DNA from: Chara braunii
Lineage: Eukaryota > Plantae > Charophyceae
Assembly: GCA_003427395.1 (NCBI GenBank)
Contig: BFEA01000003.1
Location: 1,969,971 to 2,033,970 of the forward strand
Direction: 5' to 3'
DNA length: 64,000 bases
The notes under the pieces were generated by a model. That model saw nothing but the letters and a program-made list of their open reading frames with translations, searched no databases and was not told the DNA's origin. Shown here one piece after another: positions 3,100-46,585 of the stretch. A program made the position numbers and the translations under genes. How positions within the stretch are numbered: the stretch's first letter is position 1; each line of letters opens with the position of its first letter.

Positions 3100-4130
3100 A
3101 GATTGCAGCCAGCTGATTAGTGTCTGATTGCAACTGGCTGATTGCTAGTTGATTTCAACAAAAAATTGTTGTACGATTGGTACCTGATTGCATTTGTCTG
3201 ACTTTTGTTTACTGATTGCTGCGTGCTTGGTGCTGATTGCAGCTGGCTGATTGTTAGTTGATTTCAGCAAAATTGTGTTGTATGATTGGTAGCCGATTTC
3301 ATTTGTCTGTTTTTTTTACTGATTGCTGCGTGCTTGGTGCCTGATGGCAGTCAGTGACGGCAACAGACTGATTTCACCAGCCTGATTGCAGCTGGCTGAT
3401 TCGTGGGTTGATTCCCGCCTGATTGCCGCAAGCTGGCTACTGCTTTACTGCGTGATTGCAGCGGGTCGATTGCTGCGTCATTGTTCTGTCACTCTGTGAC
3501 TGCAATTGAGTGATTGCTGCTTGTTTGTCATCTGATTGCAGCAACTGGCTGATCATTGCTGAGTTTCTGTGTGTCTGTCTGGGGACTATGTAGCAACTGG
3601 CTGATTTGAAAGCTGATTCTTGCCAAAATGGCCGCACACCGGTCGCTGCTTGATTGCAACGGCCTGATTGCTGCGTGATTGTTCTGTGACTGCAGTAGGC
3701 TGACCGTTGCCTGTTTGCTGACTGCTGAGTTTCTGTGTGTCTGTCCGGGGACTATGTAGCAACTGGCTGATTTGAAACCTGATTCTTGCCAAAATGGCCG
3801 CACACCGGTCGCTGCTTGATTGCAGCGGCCTGATTGCTGCGTGATTGTTCTGTGACTGCAGTCGGCTGACGGTTGCCTGTTTGACTGATTGCAGCGGACT
3901 GATGTTTGCTGAGTTTCTGTGTGTTTGTATGGCAACAACGGAGTGTGATTGGCTCCTATTTCCAATCACTGCTTGATTGCAGCGGGCTGATTGCTGCGTG
4001 ATTGTTCTGTGACTGCAGTCGGCTGATCGTTGCCTGTTTGCGGACTGATTGCAGCGGACTGGAGTTTGCTGAGTTTCTGTGTGTTTGTATGGCAACTACG
4101 GAAGGTGATTGCCTCCTATTTTTTTCCAAT
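3100..4130. repeat. Nested tandem duplications (~175-180 bp units rich in CTGATTGC)
   Basis: TGCTGAGTTTCTGTGTG blocks recur at ~3557, 3724, 3907 and 4067. Confidence 0.8.
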
Positions 4131-4825
4131 TTAATTTCTTATTTATTGCTGCTCGTCGATACTTGGTCTTTCCATTTTTTTAATTATAATTATTTTTGTC
4201 ATCATCATTTAGTACCGATTATCTTGTGCTGATTCGATACTACAACAGACTGTCTTCTTGCGAGTGGCTCAACCTTTTGCGAGGAGGCAAGGGACTGTGT
4301 TAAACAGTTAAGACCAAAGAGAAATAAACATTTAATGAACTCTGGTGCTTGTGATGCCTTGGGAGTACGACTGTCTTCTTCTTCCGAACACAACGCACCC
4401 ATGGAGGAGGGCTTCGACAGAGCGAGGGAAACGGGTAATCGGGGAGATGGGGCTTCGACTCAGCTTGCACTTTGTCTTTGAGCGATCGCTTTATAACAAG
4501 CGCTCTATTTGTTGATGACATCACCATGGATCTGGGAGATGAGGGTTGGGTGTGCGGTGAACAATGTCCCCAACTACTTTCTTCACCCAGATAGAACGCC
4601 TGAGCATTATTGTTGTTTTTTTTCACTGAGACTTTCAGTGTACATGCAGTGTCTAAAAATAGATCAAGCGAATACGGAAACCTCCCTCCTCCTTTTGCGT
4701 GGTGCCCGCTGATCCTCGGAAATCATTGATTTGGGTCATATTTCTTTTTTACCACTTCTCGATTTATGCCGCTATGTTAATCTCTCTGTATCGTTCCAAT
4801 TTCAATGGATGTTGCAAAGGACATT

Positions 4826-4930
4826 CTCCGACGAAACCGTTTGTCACAGCCCGTCGTTTGTTGTCCTCTTCTCCCTCCCTCCCTCTCTGCCCCTACGGTT
4901 TACCGTAGGCAGCTCCTCTGTTTGACGATA
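4826..4930 (+). mobile_element. 5'-truncated copy of the hammerhead-bearing short repeat
   Basis: CTCCGACGAAACCGTTTGTCACAGCCCGTCGTTTGTTGTCCTCTTCTCC...TACGGTTTACCG...TTTGACGATA, with the same 3' end as the other copies. Confidence 0.85.
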
Positions 4931-5174
4931 TGCGTACCGTCAATCATCTACGCTTTCGCAGTCCATAACACGACAAGTTCGTCCGTCAATCACGGAGATG
5001 AACGGCCAGTATGCGAAGTTGCTCTATGGGGATAGCCTCCTCCTTGAGCAGACGATAAGCTTGGCTTCACTGCCAGTTATTGACGAGCACATACACAGAG
5101 CGACAGAGAGAGAGAGAGAGGGGGAGAGAGAGAGAGAGAGACCTCTGTGTGAGAGAGAGAGAGAGAGATGGTAC

Positions 5175-9176: not shown

Positions 9177-9272
9177 ATACCTGTCTCGGCCTTTTGGCTA
9201 AAAATAGATCAAGTGCACTGTATCTGTTCTGATCAGTTTAATATCTGCCATCCGTGGTCCATCGGACCACAT
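9177..9272 (+). pseudogene. U2: 3'-truncated U2 snRNA retrocopy
   Basis: ATACCTGTCTCGGCCTTTTGGCTAA..AGATCAAGTG..GTATCTGTTCTGATCAGTTTAATATCTG..GTGGTCCATCGGACCAC matches the plant U2 5' half. It has insertions, an altered branch-pairing GUAGUA, no Sm site, and an A-rich tail. Confidence 0.88.
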
Positions 9273-9745
9273 TAAAAATAAAAGATTAGAAAAAAAAAAN
9301 NNNNNNNNNNNNGGTAATCATGGCATATGGCCAGAATAGGTCGAAAAGGAGTACAGGCTGGCTGGAGGTTGTAACACAGATGCGATAGTACAGAACGCGA
9401 GGAATGAGGTCGAGGAAAGGAGGAAGAGGCAAGGAGAAGTGCATTGCGTGGCAGTGGTTGCTTTTGAGGAACGGTTATCTCTGACCGTGATCCTGAGAAG
9501 GAAGAGAGGGAGCAGCGAGAATAGAATGGTGTGTTTTCACCTGCCAGTGAATGTCGATGGGCTGTTGTTATGACAGACTGTTCTGAATGTCAAAAAAATG
9601 AAGAGATTCATTTGGGCATAGTGATACTTTGCTGGTTGGGATTCAAGTTCATTCAACACTGTTAAATAATTAAAATAAATGAATTGTTTATTGTGTACCT
9701 AGCTTCGTCTACAACAACCAAAATTTAATGCATGTGTCACGGGCA

Positions 9746-9778
<33 letters not shown>

Positions 9779-10226
9779 CGGCAAGTAATCTCAACCAGTT
9801 GTATATATTCTCCTAAAGGGAAGAGTAAGAGTAAGAGTGATGGAAAGAGTGATAACGTTGAAGAGCACTCTCTAGACTGAATATCACGCCCATTAGCTGG
9901 TTGATCCTACAAGCAGTCGCACTTAAGGGTGTTGGGGACTGCAAAAACTTGTGCCAAGGACTCAGTACACCAATTGACTGTTACGGGGCTATGCATGCGA
10001 GTGGGTGTCCGATTGGTCAAAGTGATGGGTACTGCTCCCTGAATCAAGGACAGCAATCCACAGTGAGATTCTGAGACTGCAGCATGACGCCTGAGATACC
10101 AGGCTGCATGCAGTCTGCCCTGAGACCACTGCGTCGTGAGTCCATGACAGTAATCTCTGGCCTGTCACTGAGATGGCTGCTGGAATCTAATAAACGAACC
10201 AGTCCGCCGCAGGTCATGAAGGTTGT

Positions 10227-10557
10227 TGACTGAGCACGAGGGGCATTGCTGACTGAGCACGAGGGGCATTGCTGACTGAGCACGAGGGGGCGTTGCTGAC
10301 TGAGCACGAGGGGGCATTGCTGACTGAGCACGAGGGGGCATTGCTGACTGAGCNCGAGGGGGNATTGCTGACTGAGCNCGAGGGGGCATTGCTGACTGAG
10401 CNCGAGGGGGNATTGCTGACTGAGCGCGAGGGGGCATTGCTGACTGAGCNCGAGGGGGNATTGCTGACTGAGCGCGAGGGGGCATTGCTGACTGAGCACG
10501 AGGGGGNATTGCTGACTGAGCGCGNGGNGGNATTGCTGACTGAGCACGAGGGGGCAA
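10227..10557. repeat. 24-bp minisatellite (TGACTGAGCACGAGGGGGCATTGC), ~14 copies
   Basis: Directly visible tandem array with no unique spacers. Confidence 0.95.
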
Positions 10558-12246
10558 TCCTACCTCCCGTGTGGTCGAGAGCGGTCGTGGTAGAGGTACT
10601 GAAACTCAGCATGAGACTACTGCACAAGGTTGAGGCAAGAGTCTGCAGGTTTGTCACTAGGACTGCTGCTTGAGTCCGAGCAATAGTCAGCAATCGTTTA
10701 GTGGGGGTTGCTGCCGGAGTTGAGGGTGCATGCTGCGGCGTTGTAGGTTGAGGGTATTGCTTCGGTCTGAGGATGCAGACTGCTGCAGATTGAAATTAGC
10801 TCGCACAGATTGATGCAGACTGTTGCTACGGATGCCACGTGCTTTGAAGGAGGAAATATGCTTTTATTTTGATTTGACAAGTGACAAGACGGTTTACGTG
10901 GCGATCGATGTTTGCTTGAGATTGGGGCGCTTGAGGCCGGTGGAACGCCATACTAGTAGTCCCAACTGTTGAAGTACCATAGTGAACTTAGTATGATTGA
11001 TATAGCAGCAGCAAAGGCAGGTTTGACCAACAGATGGTTGTCAGTCAACCTGAGTTCACCAACGGGGTCCGAAGGTGGTAAGATGGTTAGCTGGCGAGGG
11101 TCTGACCCCCGTCTGAGATAATCGGCACATCCGGTGATGATGTGATGAGACCGAGGTATGAAGCGGGAGTGTTGCGGCATTGACCGGAAAGGCGTCTGTG
11201 CACGAAGTGTGGGAGGAGGAGTTGATTAAATTTGAGGGAAGAAGGGAAGTAGGAGAGAGAGAAAAGAGAGTTCAACATCATCAAGGACTTCAACTGTTTC
11301 AGCTACGGCAGCTGCGACCTCTTCTTAGGACTCGTCTAGACTTGAAGGAGCTTTCAAGCATCTTGATTGGAGAACCGTCTCGCTACAAATCTGCAGAAGA
11401 CTACGTACGGCTATCTTTTGATAGTAAGTAGGTTTGCCTACTCAACCCTCACTCACCCTCAACACTCACACTTTGCATCAACCATGCACAAAATGGCATT
11501 TTTGTTTTTGGGTCAGCGTTCAAATTGTCCGTGTTTGGTCAAGGAGTCCTTGAATGGCTTGATCGGGTCGGACTGAATGATTGAGTCAAAAGAACGAGCT
11601 ATCAAATTGTGAGTGGGTTAGAAATGTGAAAGTGGAAAAGGGTGAAAGTGAATAAAGGGTTGACTTGTTAGGATTGTGTAATTGCCTTCAGTTTGTTTGT
11701 TGAAGGTTAACATACAACCTCTCATGTGATGCTCATTTTGGAAGAGCCCATCTTGACGAACTTAGGCTCTTCGCGGTCTTACACTTTGACAGTACATTGC
11801 ATTTGTGCGCTTGGTCTGGGTTCATAATTGCCACCCTTGATGATGACTAGAATAGAGAAATGCCAACGACTCTTATATTTAGTATTGTCTGGGAAAAAGA
11901 TCAAAAGGTTTTCGTACTTGATGTTTGTTTTGTGAAAAGGCCGTGAGCCTCTTGTGTTTTGTATCTTTTCTGAAACACCATAAACCTTCCCATACTTTAT
12001 GTTTTCATCGATAGGTCAAGAGTCTCTCTTAAATTATGTTTTCATAAAAGGTCACAAACTTATGCAAGCTATGTTCATGAACTTCATGCGTTCTAATGTA
12101 TAATTGAAATGTGAAAAAAATGGTGTTTCCCTTGCGTTTCCTGCTTGTGTGTATAATGCAATGATATCCCATCACCGTTAAGACCCCAACCCTTGAAATA
12201 TCCATGATTATGATTACATTAGGAAAAATTGTCTCATATATATATA

Positions 12247-12315
12247 CCCCTCGTTTGTTGTCCTCTTCTCCCTCTCTGCCTACGGTTTACCGGGCAGTTC
12301 TATTTGACGATATAT
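12247..12315 (+). mobile_element. Short 3' fragment of the hammerhead-bearing repeat in (TA)n, followed by an inverted end fragment
   Basis: CCCCTCGTTTGTTGTCC...TTTGACGATATA, then ATCGTCACAAAC (reverse complement of the element 3' end). Confidence 0.85.
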
Positions 12316-12345
12316 ATCGTCACAAACATATATATATATATATAT

Positions 12346-12608
12346 GTTTGCTGGCTTGTGATGGGGTGTGAACCGACAGTCTGTAGAGTTTTCCATCTGG
12401 TGTGGGTGAGTGATAATCTACTTTGATTTGGTTAAGGTAGATTATCATTTACAGTGTAATCAGTGAGGGGATTCTGCAGACTATTGAGGGTTCAGCCTCC
12501 TGATGAGTCGGTGAAACTCCAACGAAACAGTTTGTCACAGCCCCTCGTTTGTTGTCCTCTTCTCTCTCTCTGCCTACGGTTTACCGGGCAATTCTGTTTG
12601 TGACGATA
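12346..12608 (+). mobile_element. Longest copy of the hammerhead-bearing short repeat (retrozyme- or Penelope pLTR-like)
   Basis: Bounded by (TA)n on both sides. Contains a long G:U-rich hairpin, the hammerhead core and the common 3' tail ending TGACGATA. Confidence 0.8.
12477..12534 (+). ncRNA. Type III hammerhead ribozyme motif
   Basis: Stem III CAGACTAT-T / ACAGTTTG; stem I GAGG-(GTTCAG)-CCTC; core CTGATGA; stem II GTCGG-(TGAAACT)-CCAAC (CCGAC in the copies at 4826 and 14231); GAAA. Predicted cleavage after 12485. Confidence 0.85.
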
Positions 12609-12631
12609 TATATATATATATAATATATATA

Positions 12632-13393
12632 TAGGGTTACCTGACCGAACGTTTGGGGGCCCCCGAGCTGGCCCCCGAACGTTCGGGCGTTCGGGGTCCC
12701 GTTCGGGGGCCAAACACCTCCAGGTTCGGCCCCCGCCAAAAAACATTTCGGGGCGTAAAAATATTTTTTTTTTCTGAATTGTTTTTTGTCAGTTCTCTAT
12801 GATGCAACCTACACGCCTATAAATTTTGAAGCCATTCTGATAAGCCAAAAAAACATTAAAAATCGTCAAAGATGGGGGTGTCAAAACGTGCTCGCCCACT
12901 CACTATTTTGTTTTTTTTCACTTTTAACTTCTTGTTTTCACTTTATTTCGGGGCCTAAAGATTTTTATTATTTTTTGAAAACTTTTTAATGAGTTATTGA
13001 TTATGTAAACTACATATCTGTAAATTTTCAGGGCACTTGTCAATGCCAAAAAATAATTAAAAATCGGCAAATATGGCGGTGTCGAAAAGGTGCTGGCACA
13101 CTCACTCATTTTAATTCTCTTTTTATTTTTTTTACTTTTATCATAATGTTTATTTTTTGTATTTGATTTTTAATTCAAATTTGGTAAAGAATTTGGATGT
13201 AGTTCCCAGGCAAATGTTGTTTAGTTTATTTTTCTTCATAACATTGTTTTTTTTGGAATTTTTTGAAAACTTGTTGTTGTTGTTTTTTTCGGTTTGCGTT
13301 CGGCCTGAACGGCCGAACGCCTTCCGAAGGAATCCCGTACGTTCGAGCGTTCGGGTTCGGGCGTTCGGCCCGTCCCGACCGCAGGTAACCCTG
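12632..13393. mobile_element. hAT-like MITE (YAGGGTTRCC family) inserted in (TA)n; partial second copy at ~13420-13995
   Basis: TIRs TAGGGTTACC / GGTAACCCTG and subterminal CCGAAC/GTTCGG repeats; homologous to 31796-32560 and 35372-36022. Confidence 0.85.
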
Positions 13394-14171
13394 TATATAT
13401 ATATATATATATTCAAAATCAGGGTTCGAACATTCGGGGTCCCATTCAGGGTTAACCCTACCAAAACTTATATTGGGTCCGAAATATTATTCTTGTTCTT
13501 TTATTTTTTTTTTCCCGAGTTCTTTATAATGTGAGGTACATGCCTATTAATTTTGAAGACATTTTTCTAAGCCAAAAACAAATGAAAAATCGTCAAAGAT
13601 GGCGGTGTCAAAACGTGCTCGCCCACTCACTATTTTGTTTTTTGTCCTCTTTTCACTTTTTGTTTTCACTTTATTTCGGAGCTTAAACAATTTTATTTAT
13701 TATTTTTTGAATTTTTTTTTATGAGTGGCGTATCATGTGAAATACACCTCTATAAATTTTCAAGGCATTTACCTAAGCTAAGAAAAAATGAAAAATTGGC
13801 AAAGATGGCGATGTCAAAAATGTGCTCGCCCACCCATTAATTTTAATTTTCTTTTCATTTTTTTTTTTATTTATTATTTTATTGTTTTTTATTTATTTAT
13901 TTAGTTAAAATTTTGTAAAGAATTTAGACGTGATGCTAAGGCACATGTTATTCAGTTTATTTTTTTTGCATAACATTTTTTTTTTCATATTTTTTATGAG
14001 CTACCAGTCGGGCCGCCCGGGTCACCTTGTTTTCCCGAGCGGTCCGGTCGTGCAAGGATCAGGGAAGGTCCCGACAAAAAAAAAAAAAAAACACTATGTT
14101 ATTCAAAAAGATAAATTGAACAACTATTGCCCCAAGGTCACGTTGACATTCGTTACCGAATTTGAAATTAA

Positions 14172-14211
<40 letters not shown>

Positions 14212-14230
14212 ATTTGACGATATATATATA

Positions 14231-14415
14231 GATGAGTCGGTGAAACTCCGACGAAACAGTTTGTCACAGCCCCTCGTTTGTTGTCCACTTCTCCCTCTCT
14301 GCCTACGGTTTACCGGGCAGTTCTATTTGACGATATATATNNNNNNNNNNNNNNNNNNNNGGTTTACCGGGCAGTTCTATTTGACGATATATATATATAT
14401 ATATTCTGTTTGTGA

Positions 14416-14420
<5 letters not shown>
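14231..14420 (+). mobile_element. Further truncated copies of the hammerhead-bearing repeat in (TA)n
   Basis: GATGAGTCGGTGAAACTCCGACGAAACAGTTTGTCACAGCCCC...TTTGACGATATA, plus shorter 3' stubs at 14361 and ~14404. Confidence 0.88.
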
Positions 14421-14461
<41 letters not shown>

Positions 14462-15032
14462 TCATATATATATATATATATATATATATTTTGTCCGGTT
14501 GGGCAGGTGGCCCCGGGCCATTCTGGTAGCCTAGTGTATTTTTTATATTTTATTTTTATTTTTATTTTCGTCCACCTTCGGCCCAAACTGCCGAACATGT
14601 CTACAGGGGGGCCCGAACGTTCGGCCGTTCGGGTTCAGCCGAACTCCGGCTACCATGTTCAAAATATTATTTAGTTTAATATCACACTGTCTTTTTTCTC
14701 TTATATTTTATCCTCACAAGCAGACAGGGATGTGGACCCAGAGTTCGCTGCCTACTGCCACTAACTTTAACCAACCATCATGTTATATATTTGTCCGAGC
14801 GACTTAGATCGTGAGGATATATTTTTGAGAAAATGAGTTATCTCATCATCTGCATCCTTTCAAGGTATAGATTAACAAACTTTTTTTTTATACACACGTT
14901 AACCAGGGGTGTAATTTCCGGCGAATCTTTGCACCGAATTGCACCGAAACTGTCACATTGTGCTGATTTTTAGCCCCCTGTTAACCGTCTCTCCTTATCT
15001 CTAATTAATATTTTCCTTATCAGCATAGTGAG

Positions 15033-18000
15033 ATGTAAGTCTCAGAAGGACACATCTGGTTGTATCCATATCAACGGTTCGTTATCCGAAAGATATCCAA
15101 TCTCTCGCTCAGAACGACAGGGTGATCCTCTGGTTCCACCTATCTTTTTATTTGTGATGGAAGTCATTGCCTCCTTTTTGCATAAAAACCCATCAATTCA
15201 ACATCTACCGGACCTTGACACGGGCACACCGCACCATATTCAACTCCCAACAGTAATAATGTTCGCTAATAACCTTACTATCCTAATAAGGGTTTCGGAT
15301 TCGTCAATCAAAGCATTAGTAAGAGCGGTGGAAGCATTTAGGCTAGCCTCATAAATGAAGATCAACTGGAAAAAAAAACATAAGATGGTGGCTCACAGAA
15401 GAGGAGAAACCCCTGCTGGAGGCACCGGAAGCGGACATGACAACAACCCGAGGAACCACCTAGGTAGTTGGGTATCATGGTTTCCAAGGAAGGTCCAGCC
15501 CCGCAAATGACGAAAAACATGTTAACCAAGCAAGTCAACAAGATTGGGCAATGGGGGGACCAGAGCCCTGACGTTGAACACCTCCGAGTCCATTTTTTCG
15601 ATAAAGTGGTACATCGCCTTCATCTGGACGATACCCGAGCACACGATCAAAGAACTTAACAGCAAAGCACGAGCATATCTATGGTCATTGGACCCTAACA
15701 AAACCAGATGCATCCCCAAAGTAGCATGACATTTCATAACGAGGAAACCCTCCAAAAGTGAGCTATGTATAATTGAGAGGCGGTCAACAGAGACCCAAAA
15801 TTTCAGCATTTATTTAATGTTATTTATAAGAAAACCATAAGCCTTTTTTAACCAAAAATTACATCATTCCATAGACTGCAGTGCCACACCATATTAACAA
15901 ACCATTAAAAAAAAGAATAAAAATAAATAAAAACAGGGTGAAACAGTAAGGCAAAAGTGCACTTGAATGACATTTTGGATTCAGCGAATTTTTAGAATTT
16001 TCAGCATTTTTTTAAATGGCCATATCAGAGGAAAAAATTCCAATGCTCCAAATGAGACCAAACTCGGTACACAACCACCATGAACTAAGACAAAAACAGG
16101 CAAAAAAAAACCATAAACTTTCACCTCCAAACCCTAATTTCAGTTTTGGACCTGTTGCAAAGGCGCTGAAACTGGGGGGTTCATTAACCACGTGTGGTAT
16201 AATTGACCCTAACCAGAAAACAAAAGCCCTGCAGATGAAATGGATAATTAAACTGCTAACTCAACAAAGGTTGGTCTGACACAAGTTTGCACTTGATAGT
16301 GTAAAAGGCATAGCCTAGTCCAGTCACCGATGAATATGTCCGAACTATTATGGGTTATGAACAAGGATTGGTCATCCAAGATAGGAAGGAGAAGGCGGAT
16401 GCCGAACTCACAAGAAAATGGAGTCACCTCCCCAAACCCCTACTGGTCACCCCTTATCCAGATCTGGAGAAGCATCATGCCGGAAAAAGTAAGAAAACCA
16501 AAGTCTAAAGAAGAGGCTTTACGACCACCCCTTTTCGAAAACCAAGCATAAGAGACGCAGGAGACTTACCCCTGTCGCTATCTAACGGACAGCGATGGCT
16601 TTCATGGGTAAAACATGGAATCTGGAGGGTGACACACATATGGAACGAAGAGAGGAAATCATACTGGATAGATGAAGATCAATTAAGGCAACGCCTGAAA
16701 GGATGACACAACAGAGACGAAAATATGACAATTGTGGTTAGCAGCATCCCAGACGGTTGGAAAGATATTATAAAAGAAGAATTCACATGGAAAGCGGAGG
16801 GATAGGAAGTCTTAATTCAGGAAGCTATATCAAAGAAAACTTATCAATTTTCTCGCAGATCCTCGGGTATAGACCTATTGGCAGTTTTCACCTCCTTCCC
16901 TACAAGACTGCTCAAATCCAAAAACTTTCACCATCAATGATGTTGACCCACAAGAAGCAACCCTCAATTCATACACACGTTGAAAAGTGAGAGGTTTGGG
17001 GACGGAGCCAAAAACGATATTCCAAGCCGAAACACCAATCCATAACCTATATTTTGACCCAGAAGAATGGGTTTGGCTCTCGAGTAGCAACAGACTTTGT
17101 AAAACACTCATCTTGACAACACAATACTCAGTCAAAATGGGATATAGAATGCTACTAAAAATGAAGGACCCGGAGTCGGTTATCAAGGAAAGATAGACCA
17201 AATTGCTAAGTCAGAGAATGAAATCAATCCTCAAATTTCCCTCGAGGAAATACAAATCAATTCGCCCAGTCAAAATCAGAAGTCTTCAATGGTTTATCAC
17301 CTACAATGCCCTCCCAGTGAACACATGGTTACACGTCCGCAGGCGAAACAGTGACCCTAACAGTTCAGAAAAATGGTTCATGTGCTCAGATAATGAACAA
17401 GAGGACCTGCTACATTGTCCGGTAACTTGCAGCTTTGCAAGTGATATATGCGCGAGAGCCGCAACACTCTGGGATCACCTATTTCCTTCTCCGCTACCTG
17501 AACACCCCATCCAGCTACTCCTATGGACTAACATCCCCTCCCAATTCAACAAGTTCTGAGCACATCTGGTTCAGGATAATCAGTATGGGTCATATGGAAG
17601 GAGAAGTGCAGTCGGACCATTGACAACTCCAACATGTCGTCAGAACAAGTATGGGCATCAATGAAACTCGCAATGGAGACTAATATCCAGTGTCAATGGA
17701 AGAAGGTCAAGCTTCAAATTCAGCACAACCCGGACAAACAACAGGAAACAATAGCTAAGTTTAGGAGTGTGTGGCTGGTTCGGGGAAAGATAGCAGACAT
17801 TCTAGCCCTACAAATTAGATGGAAAGACTGACGCAATTCAGCTACCTCATAAGGAAATTAAAATGAGGGGCTCCTTTCAAAAGCGATCTCGGGGATACAT
17901 GAGACCCCTGGGAACCACTTAGCAACCGGTTGCCTGCTGTCTGGAGAAACACTAAGTGGGTTGCAAAATGTACCAATGATGGGCTCCAGAGGCATAAGAG

Positions 18001-26524: not shown

Positions 26525-27079
26525 CTGTGTAACCGTTTGAACGCCGTGAACACGCGTTCGCGTTCAAATTTGCGTTTGAACGCGAATTGCTCGTTCGCGT
26601 TCAAAATTGAATGGTGTTCAATTTTTTTTTTTATTAAAAAAAATATATCATTTTAATGCCTAAACATAACTTTTTTTTCTGATTTTTTTTTTATGAGTTT
26701 TGTATGATGTAAGGCAAATGACTCTCAATTTTGGAGTCATTTTGCTAAGTCACAAAAAAATGAAAAATCGCCAAAGATGGCGGTGTCAAATCGTGTTCGC
26801 TTACTAATTTCAATTCTTTTTTCACTTTTTTACTTTTTGTTTTCTATTGTTTTTTCCAATTTGGTAACGAATTTAGATGTAATGCTCAGGCAAATATTGT
26901 TTATTTTATTGTTCTTCATAACATATGTTTTTTTGGAATTGTTAGAGGGGTTTTTTTTTGTTTTTTTTTTTTCGCGCGCAGAATTCAACTCCGCGTTCGG
27001 TCCCGTTCATTGAACGCGTGTGCATTCCGTTCGATTTCTGAACGGAAAACCCGCGTTCAATGAACGCGCGGTTTCATAG
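26525..27079. mobile_element. hAT-like MITE
   Basis: 8-bp TSD ATTACAAG; imperfect TIRs CTGTGTAACCG / CGGTTTCATAG; subterminal GAACGCG repeats. Confidence 0.85.
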
Positions 27080-31075: not shown

Positions 31076-31366
31076 CTAGGCTATCAGAGTGGCCCGGGGT
31101 CACTTGCCCGGCCGGGCCAAAAACATTATAAAAAATAAAAAATAAAAAATAAAAAATAAACTTTTATTTTTATTTTTTATTTCAAATTTGGTGAAGAATT
31201 TCGATGTGACTTTGAGGCAAAAGTTGTTTAGTTTATTTTTCTGCATAACATAGTTTTTTTTTTCGATTTTTTTGACTTTCTATTTTTTTGTTTTTTTTCT
31301 GGGACCTTCCATGGTCCTTGCACGGGCTGGCCACCCGGGACCCGAGCGGCCCGGCTGATAGCCTAG
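31076..31366. mobile_element. hAT-like MITE
   Basis: TIRs CTAGGCTATCAG / CTGATAGCCTAG; 8-bp TSD CTTTTGAA. Confidence 0.85.
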
Positions 31367-32654: not shown

Positions 32655-32988
32655 CTGTGTAGCACAACGAAAATGTTCGGAGTTTTTCCGAACCTCCGAA
32701 CATGTTCGGGTGTTCGGTCGAACGCCACCCAAACGCATTCAGCCAAACATATTCCAAAACAAAATTGGTTTTTGATTTTAAACTCGAGTTTGGTTCCGAA
32801 TTTGACCATACCTCCAAGGCAAAAGTTGTTTGTATTATTATTTTACATAATATATATTTTTTTCAGATTTTGTGGAAAACTTTTTTTTTTTTTTTTTTAT
32901 GTTCGCGTTCGGAGAGTTTCGACGCTCGTTCGTGTTAGGTCCTGAACGTTCGGGTTCGGTCACCGAACACGAACACAATGCTACACAG
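32655..32988. mobile_element. hAT-like MITE
   Basis: TIRs CTGTGTAGCA / TGCTACACAG; TSD ACAAGTAC/ACAAATAC. Confidence 0.83.
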
Positions 32989-35371: not shown

Positions 35372-36022
35372 CATGGTTACTAGGCCGAACGTTTTGGGGG
35401 CCACGGGCTGATCCCCGAACGTTCGGGTGTTCGTGGTCCCGTTCGGGGGTCGAACCTGAAGGGGTTCGGCCCCCGCTAAAAAATATTTCGAGGTCTAAAA
35501 ATAGTTTAATTTTGTTGAATTTGTTTCTTAAAATTCTTTAGAATATGCGCTACACCAACATAAATTTTCAAGGCATTTTGCTTCGCCAAACAAAAATAAA
35601 AAATCATCAAAGATGACGATGTTAAAAATGCTTGGCCACTCATATTTTTTCTTTTTTTTTCACCTTTTACTTTTTGTTATGATTTTATTTTTATGCCTCA
35701 ATTTTTTTTTTTTTTTTGCGTGAGTTTTGTATTATGTGAAGTATACATATGGAAAGTTGCAGAGCATTTGACTATGCCAAAAAATAATGAAAAATCACCA
35801 AAGATTGTGGTATTGAAAACAAGTTTGCGCACTCAATTGTAATTTTTTATTTTTATTTTTTATTATTTTTTTATTAATATATATATATATATATGTTTTT
35901 TGGTAAGGACTTTTGATCCATAGGGATCCCTAAGGGATCCCGTACGTTTGGGCGTTCGAACGCATTCCTAAGGGATCCCGTACGTTCGGGCATTCGATCC
36001 ATGCCGAACGCCGGCCACCCTT
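35372..36022. mobile_element. hAT-like MITE (degenerate YAGGGTTRCC family)
   Basis: 8-bp TSD ATTATAGA; body homologous to 12632-13393. Confidence 0.82.
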
Positions 36023-43300: not shown

Positions 43301-46300
43301 AAATTTGTTTAACAGTCTGTGCAAACATGCATGCATGCATGCATGCCCGGCCTGGTCGTATATGCTTTAATACGGAAACTGCAGTGCCTGTGGCACTCAC
43401 TGTTTGTTGTACGAGGCGACCGACTGCACTCGAATCTGCACGGTCATTATAGCTGTATAGAGGGCAACTTTCAGTCCATATACAGCCAGTGATAATGGAC
43501 GGATGGCAATTGGGGTGAAGACGGTAGGTTGTGCACATCTCGTGCGAGCGTGATAACTACGTGGCCTGTGTCACTTGTGGTATGAGGACACGCTGTCGTG
43601 AAAGTACGGCTGTAGTGACGTGTTGCGCATTTGTAATCGTGAGTGTGATTGATGGCATGGTCTGTGTAACATGTGGAGGGAATGTTAACGCCATGGTCTG
43701 TACCACTGGTGGGTATGAAGACACGTAATTTGTGTGCAGGGAGCTCTGCTAGAGTATGGCTGTAGTGACGTGTTGCGCATTTTTGTAATCGTGAGTGTGA
43801 TTGATTGATGGCATGGTCCGTGTGACATGTGGAGGGAAAGATAACGCCATGGTCTGTGCCACTGGTGGTTATGAAGAGACGTAATTTGTGTGGAGGGAGC
43901 TCTGCTAGAGAGGACGGCTGTAATGACGGGTCGTCCCTTGCGGTTCTCTTTTGGCCACAGGTTGCATTGCCTGTGTCACTTGTGGGTATGAAGACACGCA
44001 ATTTGTGTGGAGGGAGCTCTGCCTCTGCTTGAGAGATCGGCTGTAATGACGGGTCGTACGTTCCGGTTCTCTTTTGGCAACAGGTTTCGAAAAACCGTCG
44101 ACCATTCAGCAGAGGGGCATCGTGCCGTTCTGCAAAGGACTGGATGTCATTCAGCAGGCACAGTCCGGTACGGGGAAGACGGCGACTTTCTGTTCTGGAG
44201 TTCTGCAGCAGCTGGACTACGAGACGTTGGCATGCCAAGCACTCGTACTTGCGCCTACGCGAGAGTTGGCGCAGCAGATAGAGAAGGTCATGAGGGCACT
44301 GGGAGACTACCTCCAGGTGAAGGTACACGCTTGTGTCGGAGGCACGAGCGTCAGGGAGGACCAGAGGATCCTGCAGAGTGGTGTACATGTTGTCGTTGGA
44401 ACACCAGGACGTGTGTACGACATGCTTCGCCGAGGAGCGTTGAAGCCCGACTACATTAAAATCTTCGTTCTCGACGAGGCCGATGAAATGCTCTCCCGAG
44501 GATTCAAGGACCAGGTACGGCTTTCTGCATCCCTCCTGTCTCTCTGAATTTACCCGCGCTCTTTGTTTGTTTGCCGTTTCGTGTAGGCGTATCTTCTTTT
44601 AGATATCGCGTCTTTTTCTTTTTTGCTAGTCTTATCTATCGACCAGCTCTTACACGAATCGAAGTGCTCTTACGTTGATATCGGGTCTTTTGTTTTTTTT
44701 TAGTAAGTCTTATCTATCGACCAGTTCTTACACGAATCGAAGTGCTCTTACGTCAAGATAGGGAGAAAAAAAGAAAAAAAAAGAAAAAAAATAAAAGAAA
44801 GAAAAAAAGAAAAGAAAAGAAAAAAGATAGGGAGAACAAAAAAAAAAAGATAGGGAGAAAAAAGAACTTCGTGGCGTTAATTTGTGTTTGATTCTCGTGG
44901 CGTTAATTTGTGGCGTTTATTCGGGCGAAGCCGGTCGTACGGTCTAACATTCTCGTGGCGTTAATTTGTGTTTGATCGTAGACTCGGGACTTTTATTTAT
45001 CTTGATTAACACAAAGACGGTTGACCCTTGGGTATGGATACGTTTCTCAACCGAATAGAACGTGCGGTAATTATAGCCGTTTTGGTGGTGATTTCTGATT
45101 TCCGTTTCGATACTGTGGTGATAATGACCGTGCATTATGGTCGGGCGAAGCCGGTCGTAATGTAGAACATTCTCGTGGCGTTAATTTGTGTTTCATCCTC
45201 TTCTTGGACATTTTTAGGGCCGTTTTTGGGGCCGATTTACGTTTCGATAGTGTGGTAATGACCGTGCGTTTTATTCGGGCGAAGCCGGTCGTACGGTCTA
45301 ACATTCTCGTGGCGTTAATTTGTGTTTGATCTTAGACTCGGACTTTTATTTATCTTGATTAACACATGGACGGTTCTTCCGGTACGTGGCGTTTATTTGT
45401 GCTCGATCTCGTCTCTGACAGTTGGTTATCTTTGATGATTTTGAGGTTCTTGCGGTGTGTGGAATTGTGAACAGCAGGTAATTAGTAAGTACTAGAGAGC
45501 TGATCCGACGTTTGGTTCTGCTTTCTTTTTTTCCTCAACAGGGTTGAGGAGTGTATGTGAGGAAGGACATTTAAGGAAGGACTTTAAGTATATAAGGAAG
45601 GACATGTAAGGGAGGACATGTAAGGAAGGACAATTAAGGAGTGTATTAAGGAAGGAGAGCAGGTAATACTAGAGAGCTGATGCGAAGTTTGTTTCCGCTT
45701 TACTTTTTACTCCAACAGGGTTGAGGAGTGTATATAAGGACATGTAAGGAAGGACTTACGTATATAAGGACAGGAAGGACTTTAAATATATAAGGATATG
45801 TAAGGAAGGACTTTTAAGTATGTAAGGACTGTAAGGAAGGACTTTTAGTAGACATGTAAGGAAGGACATCAAATTTGAAAGTAGATTAGGTCTTTAAGAG
45901 CTGATGGGACGTTAATTTGTGTTGTGTTTGTCCGAGCTTGTGTGTGCAGATTTACGATATCTTCCAGCTGCTACCGGGCAAGCTCCAAGTCGGTGTGTTC
46001 TCGGCTACCATGCCTCCTGAGGCTCTGGAGATCACGAGAAAGTTCATGAACAAGCCGGTGAAGATTCTGGTCAAGAGAGACGAACTGACCCTCGAGGGTA
46101 TCAAGCAGTTTTACGTGAACGTGGACAAGGAAGACTGGAAGCTTGACACTCTGTGCGATCTCTACGAAACCCTGGCCATCACGCAGAGTGTCATCTTCAT
46201 CAACACGAGAAGGAAGGTCGACTGGTTGACGGACAAGATGCGCTCTCGTGATTTCACGGTCTCTGCTACCCACGGAGATATGGACCAGAACACTCGTGAT

Positions 46301-46585
46301 GTCATCATGAGGGAATTCAGGTCCGGTTCCTCTCGCGTCTTGATTACCACCGATCTCCTTGCGCGCGGCATCGACGTGCAGCAGGTCTCCCTCGTCATAA
46401 ACTATGACCTGCCCACTCAACCCGAGAACTACTTGCATCGTATTGGAAGGAGCGGGCGATTTGGGAGAAAGGGTGTGGCCATCAACTTCGTCACGCAGGA
46501 CGATACCCGCTTGTTGCAAGACATTCAGAAATTCTATAACACGCAGATCGAGGAGCTTCCGAGCAACGTTGCAGATTTGTTGTAG
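40321..46585 (+). CDS. EIF4A: Eukaryotic initiation factor 4A (DEAD-box RNA helicase), 413 aa; join(40321..40388,42548..42654,44084..44514,45950..46585)
   Basis: All introns are GT-AG with consistent phases (68+107+431+636=1242 nt). Motifs [10 protein letters not shown] (Q), [34 protein letters not shown]; plant-like N-terminus [20 protein letters not shown]. An acceptor TTTGCAG 5 nt before the ATG implies a 5'-UTR intron (possible donor ~38944). Confidence 0.97.

Follow-up and report, generated by a model that had tools for sequence, protein, structure and literature searches.

What kind of element carries a hammerhead ribozyme in the genome of Chara braunii? The question is raised by a stretch of 64,000 nucleotides in contig BFEA01000003.1 (positions 1,969,971 to 2,033,970 of the forward strand), referred to here as the window, in which a full-size type III hammerhead had been predicted from the sequence letters. 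We read the motif, located at 12477-12534 (+), as a damaged but true type III hammerhead within one full-length copy (12346-12608, +; 263 nt, composed of a long hairpin plus a tail) of a short, non-coding retroelement that inserts into (TA)n in a green-lineage genome, and we give this reading a probability of about 65%. Related copies at 1192, 4826, 12247 and 14231, together with others in the public contig BFBZ01009962.1 (L001), confirmed that the motif lies inside a dispersed short repeat. The message of the locus itself is modest: one slightly damaged copy among tail-only remnants.

The motif was delimited with Rfam (RF00008), a descriptor of our own and fold energies. On the + strand it comprises the stem III 5' strand CAGACUAU (12477-12484), which pairs with 12527-12534, followed by position 17 of the hammerhead numbering (U12485), a stem I hairpin GAGG/GUUCAG/CCUC (12486-12499), the core CUGAUGA (12500-12506), a stem II hairpin GUCGG/UGAAACU/CCAAC (12507-12523), GAAA (12524-12527) and the stem III 3' strand CAGUUUG (12528-12534). 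Three helices surround the core. Loops cap stems I and II and stem III is open, as in type III topology, and 11 of the 11 invariant core bases are intact (C3-U4-G5-A6-N7-G8-A9, G12-A13-A14 and the A15.1-U16.1 pair, the last formed by A12527 opposite U12484). The cleavage triplet A12483-U12484-U12485 (AUU) agrees with the NUH rule, in which H = U is allowed, with 16.2 unpaired in this copy; self-cleavage is predicted from the hammerhead numbering 3' of U12485, between 12485 and 12486. The complete type III topology described in the original prediction was recovered in full, with all quoted strings in place and an Rfam match to the full model. Rfam Hammerhead_3 aligned end to end (model positions 1-54) with 12478-12533, the sole hammerhead match of the window, at 29.9 bits (E = 1.6e-4 on 401 nt, 0.025 on the whole window). 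In this Infernal check, suggested at the outset, the match is full-length, but its score lies below the curated gathering threshold of 48.5 bits.

A relaxed type III descriptor was also applied, which demanded a stem I of at least 4 bp, a stem II closed by G...C and containing no more than one mismatch, a stem III with 5 or more of its 7 pairs formed, and an NUH triplet. It detected one site in the window, the 12477 motif, and none in 400 simulated windows generated by a first-order Markov model with the dinucleotide transition frequencies of the window. Because no simulated window contained a site, the motif is real and not a chance assembly, and judged on its sequence 12477-12534 is a genuine type III hammerhead motif within a dispersed repeat. 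A complementarity of 4 bp between loop I and loop II (UUCA/UGAA) was observed and set aside as evidence, being judged too short.

Two non-pairs were identified in this copy, namely A12483.C12528 at 16.2/15.2, beside the core, and C12509.A12521 in the third pair of stem II. As sequenced, the 58-mer has a ribozyme fold of -6.7 kcal/mol versus -13.3 kcal/mol for the minimum free energy (MFE) of an alternative fold, and across the 58-71 nt hammerhead region the MFE structure differs from the ribozyme fold, with an energy that does not stand out from that of shuffled sequences (z -0.08). When G is placed at 12483 and 12521, the ribozyme fold reaches -18.9 kcal/mol versus an MFE of -20.2 kcal/mol, so that the MFE structure all but coincides with the ribozyme. 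The copies at 14231 and 4826 do carry G at the position of 12521, and for 12483 a G is indicated by C12377 of the complementary arm, where the antisense string GACAGTCTG was found at 12375-12383 as reported. From this arm (12375-12383) an ancestral GUC or GUU cut site is a reasonable conclusion, and the earlier suggestion of such a site combined with a repaired stem II likewise appears reasonable, since the two G residues bring the ribozyme fold close to the MFE. The related statement that the defects are corrected elsewhere holds in part: CCGAC occurs in the 14231 and 4826 copies, but these are 3' remnants and not hammerheads. In the reverse-strand copy 1192-1288, stem II reads GUUGG/CCAAG (U-A in place of the C-G or C.A found elsewhere) and the stem III strand is ACAGUCUG; the string ACAGTCTG that had been quoted for this strand is indeed present. 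The third pair of stem II thus forms a compensatory series, C-G (14231), C.A (12477) and U-A (1192), which is the only covariation seen.

The low Rfam score can be attributed to these stem defects, because a control hammerhead from phage-like contigs, with the same core and stem II and with intact stems I and III, scores 53.6 bits. For the 12477 copy, self-cleavage is expected to be slow or unlikely in view of the two mismatches (A12483 and A12521). The original prediction overstates this copy, which is below the Rfam threshold, thermodynamically disfavoured and locked in a long hairpin. Such a weak score, the failure of the 58-71 nt region to adopt the ribozyme as its MFE fold (with a z-score no better than shuffles) and the occurrence of a single full motif in the window would also be expected of a chance look-alike in a structured repeat that never cleaved itself. 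We consider this account very improbable: no motif of such quality arose in 400 simulated windows, the 11 core bases are all intact, a canonical ribozyme close to the MFE is regained by two single transitions, each of which has support in sister copies or in the complementary arm, and stem II varies in a compensatory manner.

The long hairpin spans 12346-12517, with about 85 bp per arm and an outer base pair formed by 12346 and 12517. Folding and arm-to-arm alignment delimit a G+U-rich 5' "anti-ribozyme" arm (12346-12429, +; 70% G+U) and a 3' arm (12430-12517, +) that contains the 5' two thirds of the hammerhead. The partners of the left arm are the cut site, stem I, the entire core and, in stem II, the 5' side and the loop. 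The fold of 12346-12608 has an energy of -98 kcal/mol versus a shuffle mean of -73 (z -5.85); the hairpin fold contains 71 pairs, 17 of them G:U, and is far more stable on the + strand (-84 kcal/mol) than on the complementary strand (-41.6 kcal/mol). When the left arm was compared with the reverse-complemented right arm, 52 positions were Watson-Crick, 19 were G:U on the + strand and 2 would be A.C (19 versus 2, two-sided binomial p = 2e-4). Since a decaying DNA inverted repeat should give both kinds of mismatch equally, the pairing appears to have been kept, or the mutations to have arisen, at the level of + strand RNA, that is, in the polarity of the ribozyme. Furthermore, the wobble partners facing the invariant core (for example G opposite U7 and U opposite G8) are located in the left arm. 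As these changes are confined to the left arm opposite the core, the ribozyme sequence would have been constrained in the lineage that yielded the 12346 copy; we take this to mean that the ribozyme arm kept the hammerhead consensus and that the other arm changed only as far as pairing allowed. In the fold of the full element the ribozyme stems have a probability of about 0, and the ribozyme is predicted to be masked within the long hairpin, as in the rods of viroids and retrozymes.

Beyond the hairpin lies a 3' tail common to all copies (12518-12608, +; blastn and alignment), which ends in ...GTTTGTGACGAT and runs into (TA)n. The tail is about 90 nt long and terminates in GACGAT(AT)n, and the shared 3' end of the dispersed repeat, defined by the same comparison, reads ...CCGGGCAGTTCT(A/G)TTTG(TG)ACGAT followed by (AT)n. 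Apart from the 12346 copy, four copies were identified in the window and two in L001, all with the common 3' end and all truncated at the 5' end. The full copy is bounded by (TA)n upstream (12328-12345), which represents the microsatellite of the insertion site, and downstream (12606-12634). Next to it, an inverted fragment (12310-12328, -) repeats the last ~13 nt of the tail plus TA, so that 12310-12328 and 12595-12613 form a perfect 19-nt inverted repeat. Just upstream, a tail-only copy of the "TATTTGACGAT" subfamily occupies 12247-12317 (+), starts at the equivalent of 12524-12545 and may reach ~12222 across an internal (TA)6, creating a partial tandem with the full copy. The 12247 and 12346 copies belong to different tail subfamilies and are therefore separate insertions.

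A second group of copies is found in the (TA)n tract 14170-14490, in which five or more pieces of the 3' end are nested, ranging from 8 to 110 nt; one of these is inverted. The longest, with a perfect stem II, occupies 14231-14340 (+); it starts at the equivalent of 12502, inside the core (GATGAG...), and ends at an assembly gap in (TA)n. Two 3'-end fragments of ~32 nt and ~15 nt are nested in the same (TA)n at 14362-14419 (+), and a 12-nt fragment (14211-14222) and an inverted mini-fragment (near 14459-14466) complete the group. The gap, a run of N at 14341-14361 within the fragment-bearing (TA)n, means that the true arrangement may be longer. Two older 5'-truncated copies are located at 4826-4931 (+; start equivalent 12517) and 1192-1288 (-; start equivalent 12507). 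Insertion in (TA)n was observed for the 12247, 12346 and 14231 copies, the fragments at 14211-14466 and the copies in L001; the older 1192 and 4826 copies lie outside such tracts.

L001 was the sole contig matched by an exact tail-pattern scan of the metagenome collection. Its direct copy begins at the equivalent of ~12521-12524, and L001 329-416 is 98.9% identical over 88 nt to the tail of the 12346 copy, an identity between contigs that points to recent activity. At 273-390, direct and inverted tail copies are joined at their truncated 5' ends and form a 58-nt perfect palindrome; this palindrome draws many sub-threshold matches to microRNA precursors in Rfam. The tail pattern had no match in the genome-contig and viral collections, the open reading frame (ORF) products of the repeat gave no candidate in the protein collection, and pattern scans of the metagenome, genome-contig and viral collections and protein-collection searches yielded no further full-length copy. 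Additionally, the U6 small nuclear RNA (snRNA) is represented by a decayed full-length pseudogene at 4725-4822 (-; Rfam U6 25.4 bits versus a gathering threshold of 44), which faces the 4826 copy head to head, with 3 nt between its 5' end and the truncated 5' end of that copy. This geometry is the same as that of the inverted copy pair in L001, and the junction may mark a chimeric insertion, with U6 RNA copied into DNA by reverse transcription that began at the opposite nick.

The copies thus agree at the 3' end but are truncated to different extents at the 5' end; some form partial tandems or lie next to inverted truncated copies, and the insertions favour microsatellites, here (TA)n. Penelope-like elements are known for 5' truncation, partial tandems, adjacent inverted truncated copies and microsatellite bias (PMC8557442). 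Because the features of the Chara copies match this list, the pattern indicates insertion by target-primed reverse transcription of a Penelope-like kind. The classification as a retroelement was in this respect well founded, given the fixed 3' end, the ragged 5' ends, the (TA)n sites and the inverted partner copies.

The perfect 19-nt inverted repeat flanking the unit at 12310-12328 and 12595-12613, the strong internal hairpin and the TA-rich flanks might instead suggest a foldback or MITE-like (miniature inverted-repeat transposable element) DNA transposon, with terminal inverted repeats (TIRs) and a preference for TA, in which the hammerhead-like motif would be a passenger without a role in mobility. 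Such a transposon is, in our estimation, very improbable. The inverted repeat occurs at the long copy only, and the other six copies lack a left end, share the right end and have ragged 5' boundaries; very short pieces of the 3' end are nested within (TA)n; (TA)9 lies between the left "TIR" and the unit, and this "TIR" makes better sense as a small inverted copy of the tail; and the G:U asymmetry of the hairpin reflects a constraint at the RNA level. On these grounds the foldback identity was rejected in favour of the retroelement.

No reverse transcriptase (RT) or endonuclease domain (Pfam) was detected in ORFs within 5 kb on either side of the element, so an autonomous element close by was rejected; the element is non-coding and, on this evidence, non-autonomous. 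An ORF at 17203-17559 (+) gives a sub-threshold zf-RVT match (25.3 bits versus a cut-off of 27.5) and may be a C-terminal remnant of a plant-type long interspersed nuclear element (LINE); no RT domain was found in its neighbouring ORFs, and a protein-collection search over a limited length range returned no relatives.

Type III hammerheads are typical of the long terminal repeat (LTR) retrozymes of flowering plants and of Avsunviroidae, with isolated fern and algal cases (PMC4918200, PMC7761336). This association and the rod-like RNA would both be explained if the locus were a plant-type LTR retrozyme, a solo LTR or an endogenised viroid-like RNA, which we regard as the least probable of the alternatives considered. 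Direct repeats of 300-400 bp are missing around the element, a tRNA-Met primer-binding site (PBS; TGGTATCAGAGC, at most one mismatch) was not found anywhere in the window, the ribozyme is present in one polarity only, and 3'-anchored truncation with (TA)n targeting is a non-LTR feature. An LTR retrozyme and a viroid-type element were accordingly rejected, with one hammerhead in 64 kb and no direct repeats of ~350 bp around 12.4 kb. Nor does the locus resemble a tandem retrozyme array of the metazoan type, as a tail-only copy precedes the single full copy. A tRNA-derived short interspersed nuclear element (SINE) was also rejected, ARAGORN finding nothing in 12000-14600; stem I, compared by eye with the B-box consensus, differs at 3 of the 9 specified positions. 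We read the element as a non-LTR relative of retrozymes, a cousin of known systems and not something wholly new.

Its novelty had been put as possibly undescribed. The short non-coding element itself was not found in the literature searched, but hammerheads of Chara braunii Penelope-like elements were published in 2021: Craig et al. described canonical hammerheads in two Penelope-like subclades of this species, Chlamys-2_cBra and the PLE-X type (PMC8557442). In the same work, non-autonomous Chlamys elements with a shared 3' end, such as MRC1, are described in Chlamydomonas (PMC8557442). An alternative is that all copies, including the one of 263 nt, are 5'-truncated 3' ends of an autonomous Chara Penelope-like element such as Chlamys-2_cBra, representing its pseudo-LTR or its 3' untranslated region with a "3'-HHR" (hammerhead ribozyme), and that no separate non-coding family exists. 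Every copy observed is a 3' fragment of variable length, and a canonical 3' hammerhead is reported for Chlamys-2_cBra, with frequent 5' truncation, partial tandems and inverted copies for Penelope-like elements of this kind (PMC8557442). The 5' end of the long copy speaks for a separate unit: 12346 coincides with the outer base pair of the hairpin and adjoins (TA)n, and because of this it looks like a defined end of the element and not a random stop. We hold the truncation of an autonomous element to be unlikely, though clearly more credible than the other alternatives.

For the short non-coding retroelement, a mechanism can be proposed that builds on its observed anatomy, polarity, 3'-anchored truncation and (TA)n sites. 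The element would be transcribed in the + polarity, and the 3' (UA)n end of the RNA may anneal to a nicked (TA)n microsatellite and prime reverse transcription there. Target-primed copying would be carried out in trans by a reverse transcriptase, with a Penelope-like element as its most likely source. On meeting the base of the hairpin, which is highly stable, the enzyme may often stall, producing tail-only copies, partial tandems and head-to-head inverted copies. If the hairpin is opened, the ribozyme could fold and cut between 12485 and 12486, and cleavage would release element RNA from read-through or multimeric transcripts, as has been proposed for retrozymes and Penelope-like elements. 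Stalling is suggested by five copies: the five measurable 5' ends span the equivalents of 12502-12545, around the 3' base of the hairpin at 12517, and none falls at 12485/12486. The role of cleavage is the weakest step of this model.

Several observations weigh against our interpretation. The predicted cut site is not the start of any copy in the window, and a role of cleavage in setting 5' ends is therefore not supported by the five copies. The masking arm is transcribed first and, according to the fold, should suppress cleavage of the monomer during transcription. The cut site, stem I and CUGAUGA, which make up the 5' half of the ribozyme, occur a single time in the window, in the long copy. 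In the remaining copies at most stem II, GAAA and the 3' strand of stem III are left, and the conservation seen is that of the 3' half, in three other copies. The Hammerhead_3 score misses the gathering threshold (29.9 versus 48.5 bits). Both stem defects may belong to the source subfamily and not to decay after insertion; since the tail is 98.9% identical to a copy in another contig, their timing before or after insertion is ambiguous. The strand asymmetry of the G:U pairs could partly reflect strand-biased C-to-T mutation and not selection. Finally, the link to a Penelope-like enzyme, considered most likely here, is drawn from the insertion pattern alone.

Other features of the window include a U2 spliceosomal RNA gene at 9177-9296 (+; Rfam 66.4 bits, above gathering), whose match to the model lacks the 3' portion or has other sequence in its place, and an eIF4A (DEAD-box) gene with two exons at 44074-44547 and 45917-46585 (+), 92-94% identical to land-plant eIF4A. 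The U2 snRNA and the eIF4A identity place the stretch in the green lineage, in accordance with the algal-type genome that had been suggested. Further dispersed repeats (families D6, D8 and D12) were identified at 12763-14020, 26668-26969, 31162-31296, 32764-32898 and 35506-35864; these families begin directly downstream of the hammerhead element. A tandem array of about 17 units of 24 nt occupies 10215-10622, and long GA/CT and CA microsatellites are distributed throughout the first 9 kb and around 49-51 kb.

Going further, we would tentatively propose a class of non-LTR retrozymes in streptophyte algae, in which a canonical type III hammerhead is embedded in the 3' arm of a hairpin, tuned by G:U pairs and serving as an on/off switch, and the element is copied into (TA)n by a Penelope-like enzyme; we consider this broader claim possible but doubtful. 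If true, such a class would be a missing link between two groups of hammerheads, the type III ones known from plant LTR retrozymes and viroids and those found in Penelope-like elements. In a close algal relative of land plants, a type III hammerhead within a short non-LTR element that inserts like Penelope would also bear on the origin of the ribozymes of plant retrozymes and viroids. Moreover, the element would provide a simple example from nature of a ribozyme that is hidden by pairing with a complementary arm upstream of it.

Among known systems, the motifs of Penelope-like elements are minimal ones of type I, and those of animal non-LTR retrozymes are likewise of type I and sit in tandem units of 150-400 nt (PMC4918200, PMC7761336); it has been argued that these retrozymes derive from Penelope elements and are non-autonomous (bioRxiv 10.64898/2026.07.22.740005). 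Like metazoan non-LTR retrozymes (PMC7229834, bioRxiv 10.64898/2026.07.22.740005), which are 150-400 nt long and lack a polypurine tract (PPT), the Chara element is short, non-coding and highly self-paired, with the hammerhead in one polarity, no LTR or PBS and a presumed Penelope-like or LINE enzyme. The metazoan retrozymes, however, are animal elements of type I organised as head-to-tail complete units, which yield circular RNA of unit length, whereas the Chara element is of type III, belongs to a green-lineage alga and is found as dispersed, 3'-anchored copies, 5'-truncated in (TA)n. Its ribozyme is masked in a long hairpin, which also sets it apart from non-LTR retrozymes and Penelope derivatives. 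With plant LTR retrozymes (PMC4918200) it shares the type III architecture, a stem II and loop II near the Rfam consensus, the non-autonomous and non-coding character and a rod-like RNA that masks the ribozyme; those elements have two LTRs of ~350 bp, each with a hammerhead, a PBS, a PPT, target duplications of 4 bp and a length of 600-1000 nt, in contrast to the 263-nt Chara unit, in which no LTR or PBS was found and whose insertion is of the non-LTR kind. The likeness to green-lineage Penelope-like elements (PMC8557442) lies in the 5' truncation, partial tandems, inverted truncated copies and microsatellite bias, that is, in the insertion pattern, and unlike them the Chara element has no coding capacity. 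As for the microsatellite targeted, (TA)n is reported for Naiads and (CA)n and (C)n for Chlamys (PMC8557442), and the Chara element uses (TA)n.

A further comparison concerns the two related phage-like IMG/VR contigs that supplied the control, in which a type III hammerhead is located in intergenic positions (L003 3887-3941, +; the 3338-3392 region of L002, -). They were found by scanning the viral collection with a pattern of the core and stem II, which returned no other kind of match. The phage hammerhead contains 29 nt (CUGAUGA, stem II, loop II and GAAAC) identical to the form of the algal motif with a perfect stem II; compared with this stretch, the 14231 copy is the same save for two core bases and the 12477 copy differs at A12521. 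Stems I and III are different, and the phage motif lies between genes of a phage genome and in no repeat element. Because the shared stem II and loop II are near the Rfam consensus, common descent is not implied, and the likeness is probably convergence on that consensus. Sm-alpha of Schistosoma is a SINE-like short retroposon with an active type I hammerhead and a tRNA-derived head. The Chara element is likewise a short, hammerhead-bearing retroposon, but it differs from Sm-alpha in its type III ribozyme and in having no detected tRNA-like head.

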